Part shown: positions 18,608-20,669 of the stretch, one piece after another
How positions within the stretch are numbered: position 1 is the first letter of the stretch
Layout: each line of letters begins with the position of its first letter
Source of the DNA: Wallemia ichthyophaga EXF-994
Lineage: Eukaryota > Fungi > Basidiomycota
Direction: 5' to 3'
NCBI RefSeq assembly: GCF_000400465.1
Contig: NW_008806280.1
Coordinates: 30,001 to 62,000, forward strand
DNA length: 32,000 nucleotides
Translations under genes and position numbers: made by a program
Notes under the pieces: model-generated
Databases searched by the model: none
Told to the model about the DNA's origin: nothing
What the model saw: the letters and a program-made list of their open reading frames with translations, nothing else

Positions 18608-19148
18608 ATGTCTTCTGCAGCCCACGCCAACCCAGCATTCTCCAAGAAGAACAAAGGTTCCGAAGGTATCAACTCAAAGCTTCAGCTCGTTGTCAAGTCG
18701 GGCAAGTACACGCTCGGCTACAAGTCTGCATTGAAGCAATTGAGATCTGGCAAGGGTGAGTTTTGATTATTATAAGAATACTCAGTCGATTATCTGGCAT
18801 CGCACAGCGTGACTCAAGGTCGCTGCTAGAACTGGAGCCTCTGTTAATCACATTTGGCTGAGAAGGTTCTCTCTTACTCCCCACTAACACTCTCTCTCAG
18901 CCAAGCTCGTCCTCATCGCAGGCAACTGCCCACCTTTGCGCAAGTCTGAGCTCGAGTACTTTGCCATGCTTTCAAAGACAGCTGTTCACCACTACTCGGG
19001 CTCAAACGTCGCCCTCGGTACCGCTGCTGGTAAGCTTTTCCGCGTCGGTGTCCTCACCATCCAAGACCAAGGTGACTCTGACATTGTGAGTTGAAAATTT
19101 TACCCCTTTCTATGTCTTACACACCAACAGCTCTCATCATTCGAATAA
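18608..19148 (+). CDS. RPL30: 60S ribosomal protein eL30; introns 18756..18900 and 19086..19130; probable 5'-UTR intron 18553..18602
   Basis: [37 protein letters not shown]|[62 protein letters not shown]|LSSFE*. Confidence 0.97.
18828..18870 (+). promoter_or_regulatory. Kink-turn RNA element in the RPL30 intron (putative eL30 binding site)
   Basis: 5'-AGAACUGGAGCC-3' (18828-39) pairs with 5'-GGCUGAGAAGGUUCU-3' (18856-70). This gives a GCC/GGC C-helix, a 3-nt UGA bulge, G.A, A.G and A.G pairs, one G.U pair and 5 Watson-Crick pairs. Confidence 0.75.
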
Positions 19149-19280: not shown

Positions 19281-20211
19281 CTAAGAAAACTTCCATCTGT
19301 TGTTACACACCGTGCACGTAACAAACGTAGTCATTGGCTCATCCGCCGATCGCGTCTGCATTTGATAGTAGGTACACTTCCTCTGCTTGCATCTACCGCA
19401 TTTGAATGAATCTGTCTCAGCTTGCTGTGGACCAGCGCCTCTAGCCTTGAATAAGTTATTCAACTCCAAAGCTCTATCCTGCTGTTTACGCTCCTCGGAA
19501 GCCATATCGCCTGAGGACATTCTACAGAAGATATCTGCAGGAGTATCACCGGAAATAACTGCAGCTCTAAGGGTAGGATTCTTCTTGTCTTTGAGGTTGA
19601 GCATCAGTGAGCGAATCTTTTTTTTATAGTCTTCTGCAGTGGAACCATTGTTATCATCGAGGACAGTGACTTCAATTGCGAGAGCTCTGTCCATAATAAG
19701 CTCAGAAGGTGCAGACGAGTCGAACACCATAGCATTGTAAAGCAAAGAGAGACAGGTATCGCGTGTTTTGTCGTTAAGTTTCTCGAAATCGACGTTATCA
19801 GTTTTACCTGAGCGTGGTTTGTCGTTTGTGGTGGTATTGGCTGTGGGACTAGACTCAGAAACTTCCTTGGGCTTCTTGGTAACATCATTCTTCCATTTCT
19901 TAACAATTTCCTTGGCTAAGTCGCTAATCTGCCTATTTTCATGGGAGCGCAGCTTACCCACAGCCAAACCAACTTTAGTTTCCTGGGATTGGATATAATG
20001 AGAACAAGGCGATTGAATACATCAAAACACACCCTTATGATATCCTCTGTAGCCGTTAATTCCTCTTTCAACGCCTTGAGTATCTCTATCATCACCTGCA
20101 ATTCCATTAGAGGGTACAACAACAACAACGGCCAATACACACGTCACTCTTCCCAGACGCCTGAGAAGCCTGCAATTCAGTTCTCAGCTTGTTCACCGTT
20201 TTCACGTCCAT
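19281..20211 (-). CDS. DST1: Transcription elongation factor TFIIS; introns 20096..20142, 19983..20032
   Basis: Domain I MDVKTVNKL..|VMIEILKAL..|ETKVGLAVGKLR..AKEIVKKWK, central YKKKIRSL..NLKDKKNP.LR, and the zinc ribbon CGRCKQRKCTYYQMQTRSADEPMTTFVTCTVCNNRWKFS. Confidence 0.96.
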
Positions 20212-20263
20212 TTTCGTGGTGGTGGAAGTCAACGACTCCTCTCTACCTTCACCAAGAAGCCCA
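20212..20263. promoter_or_regulatory. 52-bp divergent spacer between the DST1 and MRPL24 start codons
   Basis: Lies between ATG 20211 (-) and ATG 20264 (+), and includes the pyrimidine tract ctcctctctaccttc. Confidence 0.5.
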
Positions 20264-20669
20264 ATGAGATTAGAAAAATTAGCAAAATTATCTTTCAGGT
20301 TTCCAACCAACGTACAGCCATTAGAGAGGCGTTTCCAATCAGGTCTTCTTGACGGCCGTAATCGTCAAAGTGGTTATAACGTTTCATTTTCAGAGGTGTG
20401 TTTGGGTTTATAAAGGGTTTAGCACCTCTAATACACCCTAGCGACACACCAGAAGAAGCTGGTATCCAAATATTCAAAATAAGCGTCTATTCTCAGATAC
20501 TCTACAGGACTTTGTGAAGATGAAAGTATCTACAAAGGCCTTACGTAGTATTGATAGATTTGGTGGTTTAGACAATTACCTCCTCAAAACAAGCGATGAC
20601 AAACTCGGTTTATATGGTAGAGCATTGCGGAGGTCTATCCTCGACAAGCAGCTTGTTGGAAAACAATAA
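20264..20669 (+). CDS. MRPL24: Mitochondrial ribosomal protein bL28m (Mrpl24-like); intron 20396..20441
   Basis: Missed as a whole gene by the ORF track. Spliced product is RRFQSGLLDGRNRQSGYNVSFSE|RHTRRSWYPNIQNKRLFSDTL..VKMKVSTKALRSIDRFGGLDNYLL, the L28 signature. Confidence 0.9.

Follow-up and report, generated by a model that had tools for sequence, protein, structure and literature searches.

Autoregulation of ribosomal proteins at the level of splicing has been documented mainly in Saccharomyces, and its age and generality are poorly known. The first intron of RPL30 in the salt-loving fungus Wallemia ichthyophaga EXF-994 raises the question of whether eL30 senses its own abundance through an RNA structure in that intron and, if so, by which route binding would alter splicing. 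An earlier note on this DNA had proposed a two-state RNA switch: a 9-bp helix with G.U pairs masks an upstream branch region, while excess eL30 stabilizes a kink-turn (K-turn) that cannot coexist with the helix; the upstream region is thereby exposed, the normal branch point becomes crowded, and the outcome is use of a "poison" acceptor or intron retention. The locus was analyzed within a 32,000-nt stretch of the EXF-994 genome (the window), and all coordinates below are positions in it unless a locus is named.

The gene is indeed RPL30: its spliced ORF encodes an eL30 of 116 aa and matches the W. ichthyophaga protein (P0001) at 100% identity, the annotated gene spans 541 nt (Table 1), and locus L003 (KE007230.1, strain EXF-994) matches the window base for base. 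Retention of intron 1 brings in an in-frame UGA at intron nt 9-11, the read-through ORF (P0123) ending in ...GKGEF. Among the members of the cluster no spliced or alternatively spliced Wallemia RPL30 transcript was found; the Logan contig L137 is collinear with genomic DNA and keeps both introns.

Table 1. Features of RPL30 and of its first intron, in window coordinates.
Feature	Position	Strand	Remark
Exon 1, codons 1-49 plus 1 nt	18608..18755	+	spliced translation is P0001
Intron 1, 145 nt, GUGAGU...CAG	18756..18900	+	follows codon 49
Upstream "anti-K-turn" strand, AGAAU-A-CUCAGUC-GAUUA	18775..18792	+	pairs with the K-turn hairpin in the MFE structure; contains 18781-18789
Middle hairpin, AGC-GUGACU-CAA-GGUCGC-U-GCU	18806..18827	+	in MFE and centroid structures
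UAG, probable "poison acceptor" of the earlier note	18827..18829	+	use would give a stop after 10 codons
K-turn hairpin, 43 nt, intron nt 73-115	18828-18870	+	from sequence
K-turn non-bulged strand: NC stem AGAACU, G(3n) G(2n) A(1n), C-stem GCC	18828..18839	+	
Loop capping the K-turn C-stem, 16 nt	18840..18855	+	
K-turn bulged strand: C-stem GGC, bulge UGA, G(1b) A(2b) A(3b), NC stem GGUUCU	18856..18870	+	
Branch-like CUUAC, A at 18876	18873..18877	+	6 nt after the K-turn; near the +7 to +9 of other fungi
Consensus branch site ACUAAC, A at 18887	18883..18888	+	13 nt before the 3' splice site
Intron 1 3' splice site AG	18899..18900	+	
Exon 2	18901-19085	+	
Intron 2	19086-19130	+	
Exon 3, including the stop codon	19131-19148	+	

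At the sequence level, the intron 1 hairpin is a kink-turn, and the bulged strand GGC-UGA-GA that had been described for it is there with all its elements: i) a C helix of 3 bp, GCC (18837-39) with GGC (18856-58), followed by a 3-nt bulge, UGA (18859-61), in a layout that is the same in all orthologues; ii) the tandem pairs G18862.A18836 and A18863.G18835, with A18864.G18834 as a third; and iii) an NC helix that carries on in Watson-Crick pairs and shows covariation.

The K-turn was found to be nearly invariant across the three Wallemia lineages, ~20 metagenomic basidiomycete RPL30 introns, Cryptococcus (L134:1200-1245) and two Mucoromycota. Its core is identical in W. ichthyophaga, W. hederae (L008) and W. 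mellicola (L007 and relatives), while the 5' half of the intron can barely be aligned among them and the loop is 16, 8 and 4 nt long respectively; across lineages the cap ranges from a 3-nt loop up to an insertion of ~100 nt. The NC stem holds a compensatory pair (GAACU/GGUUC in W. ichthyophaga versus GGACU/GGUCC elsewhere, i.e., A-U versus G-C), a G.U in Cryptococcus and a change of G.U to C.A in Mucoromycota, the independent changes being few overall. Moreover, a pattern scan of metagenome contigs returned ~45 matches with a 5-nt gap, of the form GGGGACUGGAGC-N5-GCUGAGAAGGUCCC, and ~40 of these lie within RPL30 genes, with the intron at the same codon-49 position. Since the G.A/A.G positions were set by the scan pattern, their invariance among the matches is by construction; the same pairs were seen independently in W. 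hederae and W. mellicola and also in Mucoromycota, except for the third pair (U.G there). The two Mucoromycota variants (L141:~960-1090 and L142:~950-1030) read GGGGGAC-AGGA-GCC…GGC-UGA-GA-UC-GUCCCCC with loops of 47 to 100 nt. In Rhodotorula the intron is present and no K-turn motif is recognizable in it, and in Acaromyces and Schizosaccharomyces cryophilus the codon-49 intron of RPL30 is absent. These sequence comparisons suggest that the K-turn module in the codon-49 intron is ancient, reaching from Mucoromycota to Basidiomycota.

The position of the K-turn relative to the branch site is also conserved. The branch adenosine (in CUGAC, CUGAU or CUUAC) lies +7 to +9 nt past the last NC pair in all but one of the 19 introns examined from basidiomycetes outside Wallemia, and in Mucoromycota the branch motif comes 10-14 nt after the K-turn helix. 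The hairpin begins 20-31 nt past the 5' splice site in the non-Wallemia basidiomycetes and at intron nt 73-87 in Wallemia, where the consensus branch site is 17-21 nt from the hairpin. The eL30 of Saccharomyces cerevisiae recognizes a structure formed by its own pre-mRNA and keeps U2 from binding (Vilardell & Warner 1997 and Macias et al. 2008, as summarized in PMC8047918). Given this eL30/U2 precedent together with the conserved branch-adjacent placement, an eL30 operator that would occlude the branch point is the best-supported function, and the intron 1 K-turn is most likely the predicted feedback sensor of eL30 itself.

The 9-bp helix on which the proposed switch turns is present as had been described: CTCAGTCGA at 18781-18789 and TTGGCTGAG at 18854-18862 can form nine consecutive pairs (C-G, U-A, C-G, A-U, G-C, U.G, C-G, G.U and A-U), two of them G.U. 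Its 3' strand spans two loop U, the C-stem GGC, the UGA bulge and the 1b G at 18862; because 18856-62 are shared with the K-turn, the RNA can form the helix or the K-turn but not both, as the earlier note had held. When the intron was folded alone, an interrupted duplex of 17 bp was predicted (18775-79/18866-70, 18781-87/18856-62 and 18788-92/18845-49), and the MFE and centroid structures both held seven of the nine helix pairs (P = 0.55), with the last two at P ~0.1 and the K-turn pairs at P = 0.02-0.07. With exon context, however, P(helix) fell to 0.06 or 0; thus partition-function folding, which had been suggested as a check, bore out most of the helix in the isolated intron and hardly any of it between exons. 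Ensembles forced into the helix or into the K-turn were only 1.3 kcal/mol apart. The intron showed no excess stability over shuffles (z = +0.46), and the K-turn cost (constrained minus free ensemble energy) in W. ichthyophaga was uninformative, at 2.8 versus 3.1 ± 1.5 for shuffled upstream sequence.

The chance level of the helix was estimated against several targets. With the 9-mer as a fixed target, picked post hoc, the best duplex with the upstream intron had -11.9 kcal/mol, which was reached by 0.2% of 1000 dinucleotide shuffles; with the 17-nt bulged strand as target p was 0.05, and with the whole 43-nt hairpin it was 0.11-0.19 under shuffles and 0.22 under genomic segments. Of 2000 shuffles, 15% gave a contiguous helix of at least 9 bp against any part of the K-turn hairpin, with G.U allowed. 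Taken on its own, the W. ichthyophaga helix is within chance.

Pairing of upstream intron with the K-turn hairpin nevertheless recurs in the genus. The upstream-versus-hairpin duplex of W. mellicola had -30.1 kcal/mol (z = -3.7; p <= 0.002 under shuffles and 0.01 under the genomic null), that of W. hederae -26.1 kcal/mol (z = -2.3; p = 0.02 and 0.07 respectively) and that of W. ichthyophaga -22.6 kcal/mol (z = -0.8), while ~20 non-Wallemia introns (z ~0) and Cryptococcus showed no excess of upstream complementarity over shuffles. The two-state proposal is partly supported by this recurrence of some anti-K-turn pairing; the helix itself recurs only loosely in the sister species, with nothing comparable in other fungi. 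The strongest competing segment is not the same from species to species. All three independently predicted Wallemia duplexes place GUC opposite the C-stem GGC: W. ichthyophaga sets CUC-AGUC opposite GGCUGAG, W. mellicola sets UUUC(U)AGUC opposite GGCUGAGA, and W. hederae forms UCGAGGUC with a tandem G.A mismatch. Moreover, the 3' extension of the strand fits the loop of its own lineage each time (GAUUA:UAAUC; AGA:UUU with UGGAG:CUCUA; UAUGGCUCU:GGAGCCAUA). MAFFT found no reliable alignment for the upstream halves of four Wallemia introns, and the "same register" of the strands therefore rests on the per-species predictions.

As the K-turn strand is invariant, two-sided covariation cannot test the competitor helix. 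Two observations are compatible with a role for the upstream region. Compared with its close relative L011, W. mellicola shows just one indel over the 102 nt at the start of intron 1, against a neutral divergence of 16-18% in the flanks, in intron 2 and in the 3' portion of intron 1. Eight W. ichthyophaga strains agree over the initial 135 nt of this intron save for an A>G at 18777 in strain L137, within the upstream strand, which preserves the pair as G.U. A decayed duplicate of the hairpin arm could yield the same complementarity without selection; by eye, the likeness of the W. mellicola anti-strand to the hairpin is limited to UGGA and UAUGGCU, and that strand may have arisen by duplication. 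Complementarity of the downstream polypyrimidine sequence to the K-turn was significant in L122 (p = 0.002) and L033 (p = 0.016) and was not general. With moderate confidence, we take the 9-bp helix to be the putative core of a competitor ("anti-K-turn") strand of the Wallemia lineage.

The explanation that we consider best, at close to even confidence, is an eL30 K-turn operator that occludes the branch point, to which a competitor strand may have been added in Wallemia. The recurrence of upstream complements in W. mellicola and W. hederae, the fixed 9-mer test (p = 0.002), the 73 nt of upstream intron that are frozen within the W. mellicola clade, and a Fisher combination of the three lineages' p-values (~0.0005-0.007, from Wallemia lineages that are few and not independent) speak against the simpler alternative that the K-turn works alone, i.e., that bound eL30 blocks branch-point recognition and the 9-bp helix is fortuitous or neutral and has no regulatory role. 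Yet that alternative, which we regard as a serious one with somewhat less than an even chance of being right, agrees with much else: the 15% of shuffles that yield a helix of at least 9 bp, the p of 0.11-0.22 for the whole-hairpin duplex, the ~20 other introns and Cryptococcus that lack an upstream excess, the P(helix) of at most 0.06 in exon context, and the readiness with which a purine-rich K-turn strand pairs with a pyrimidine-rich intron.

The acceptor choice that the earlier note had built on the helix fares worse when the sister species are compared. The "poison acceptor" UAG is missing in W. hederae (UUUGGAC) and W. mellicola (AUCUGGAC), the upstream branch region was found in neither, and the 9-bp strand has no convincing branch motif, its CUCAGUC being a poor branch consensus that is not conserved. 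In W. ichthyophaga itself, use of the UAG acceptor at 18829 would cause a frameshift, a GUGAC lies ~15 nt upstream of it, and the helix and the K-turn do exclude each other; but this candidate GUGAC sits in the middle hairpin, outside the 9-bp helix. In other fungi, moreover, the 20-30 nt from the 5' splice site to the K-turn leave no room for a branch/acceptor pair, and in ~20 of them the same K-turn abuts the branch point without an upstream competitor, which points to direct occlusion. We therefore consider the full model, in which masking and unmasking of an upstream branch decides the acceptor, very unlikely. Least probable of all is that the K-turn forms part of a small RNA hosted by the intron, or that its ligand is a different protein of the L7Ae family (Snu13/15.5K) and not eL30: mammalian intronic K-loop RNAs bound by 15.5K do repress splicing of their host introns (bioRxiv 10.64898/2026.08.03.742641) and the bulged strand contains CUGA, but box C (RUGAUGA) is absent, neither a snoRNA nor any other Rfam family matched, and the motif keeps specifically to this one RPL30 intron all the way from Mucoromycota to Basidiomycota. 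The Rfam search of the window gave 0 matches at the gathering score and chance-level ones only at E <= 10 (SNORD113, ZFAT-AS1 and similar), and a snoRNA identity was rejected on these searches.

From the operator reading, with its possible competitor, we infer binding of eL30, occlusion of U2 and whatever role the competitor may have. Once eL30 exceeds the demand of ribosome assembly it would bind the intron 1 K-turn, and the rigid eL30-RNA complex would cover the region that the U2 snRNP needs beside the branch site. Intron 1 would then be retained, and the transcript would be read no further than the UGA that lies 9 nt into it. Without eL30, the upstream strand (18775-92) would hold the K-turn open by pairing with the 3' half of the hairpin, a pairing that would also draw the 5' splice site toward the branch region, and binding of eL30 would displace this strand. 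The output would be retention versus splicing, not a choice between two acceptors. That an ancient fungal eL30 operator clamped on the branch region was turned in Wallemia into a protein-sensing two-state intron switch (zipper/competitor helix versus eL30-bound K-turn) is a tentative extension, which we hold to be possible rather than probable.

Among known systems, yeast RPL30 is the closest in function and RPL7B the closest in logic. As summarized in PMC8047918, yeast RPL30 shares with the Wallemia gene the gene and protein family, a purine-rich K-turn internal loop in its own transcript and an expected block at U2 recruitment that leaves less spliced mRNA. The yeast structure, in the same summary, is made of exon 1 and the 5' splice site, in an intron right after the start codon, whereas the Wallemia K-turn is wholly intronic, lies in a codon-49 intron, adjoins the branch point and involves neither the 5' splice site nor exon 1. 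The yeast model as that summary gives it has no competitor helix. RPL7B (Granas et al. 2025, PMC12311795) exemplifies mutually exclusive intron structures, an established mode of ribosomal-protein autoregulation: its "zipper stem" places the 5' splice site in proximity to the branch point, and binding of the encoded protein to the alternative fold removes the stem and represses splicing (PMC12311795). The Wallemia intron resembles it in that two of its structures exclude each other and one of them is a predicted protein-binding site. The protein and the RNA motif of RPL7B are others, and both of its structures are conserved across yeasts and were tested by mutagenesis (PMC12311795), whereas the Wallemia competitor is a putative one and only statistically suggestive.

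Three further systems share single aspects. The rpl30 motif of Pezizomycotina, found mostly in 5' UTRs, is a proposed eL30 autoregulatory site (Li & Breaker 2017, PMC5640933); like the Wallemia element it is an eL30-associated hairpin with a conserved purine-rich internal loop (PMC5640933), but, compared by eye with the published Stockholm alignment, it differs in sequence (…CAAUUGAUGAUAAGGAU…), in location and in having no relation to a branch point. In the archaeal L7Ae 5'-UTR K-turn (Huang, Ashraf & Lilley 2019, PMC6298567), the protein folds an otherwise unfolded K-turn of its own gene, which is likewise autoregulation by the L7Ae family through an RNA conformation switched by protein binding; there it is translation that is controlled, by occlusion of the ribosome-binding site and not through splicing, and there is no defined competitor helix (PMC6298567). 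The "allosteric switch" of the yeast RPL22 intron also uses alternative folds that control splicing in response to protein, but with another protein and a non-K-turn element, and it is known only from Saccharomyces paralogues (PMC13630204).

In the literature searched, the coverage of which was incomplete, no description of a branch-point-adjacent RPL30 K-turn was found. The presence of the same K-turn in the same RPL30 intron of Phycomyces-like Mucoromycota, Cryptococcus, mushroom-forming lineages and Wallemia suggests an ancient origin of eL30 feedback and a shift, in the course of evolution, of the place where it acts on the spliceosome (the branch point versus the 5' splice site in yeast). 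Should the Wallemia competitor prove functional, nature would here have endowed a simple protein-RNA roadblock with riboswitch-like two-state behavior.

Several observations on the intron and its surroundings are recorded here. W. ichthyophaga has two branch-like motifs 3' of the K-turn (Table 1); in W. hederae and W. mellicola the K-turn-adjacent one has decayed and the distal one is left. In Cryptococcus (L134:1233-1343), a K-turn-adjacent GUGCUGAC lies ~100 nt upstream of the 3' splice site and further branch-like motifs (CGCUAAUC and ACCGACACAG) lie nearer to it, so that this intron may have two alternative branch points, with the K-turn occluding just one. In one metagenomic clade (L023, L078 and relatives), the nucleotides that directly follow the 5' splice site (intron nt 5-15; GUCCAGUUCCC or GUCAGUUCC) are able to pair with GGGACUGGA, the 5' strand of the K-turn; the predicted cost of forming the K-turn thereby climbs to 8-11 kcal/mol, which is not significant versus shuffles. 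The middle hairpin, which immediately precedes the K-turn and can be written GC-GUGAC-UCAAG-GUCGC-U-GC, has a counterpart in W. hederae (L008:1709-1731; GCC-UUGAC-UUAAG-GUCAA-U-GGC), where by eye the changes are G-C>U-A and U.G>U-A; the loop and the bulged U are kept, with two pair-preserving changes, and W. mellicola has another hairpin (GAAGAAA…UUUCUU) in that place. W. ichthyophaga strain L002 carries a T>A at 18891, in the pyrimidine tract. A sub-threshold SNORD113 match (19 bits, E = 0.8; 19099-19148, minus strand) overlaps intron 2 and exon 3 and was judged to be chance. The gene neighbors of RPL30 (19281-20400 and upstream of 18380, both on the minus strand) are kept throughout the genus: convergent with RPL30 is a TFIIS-like gene with Med26, TFIIS_M and Zn-ribbon domains, upstream of it lies a SAC3/GANP-domain gene, and farther downstream comes a gene for a bacterial-type L28 (Ribosomal_L28, PF00830).
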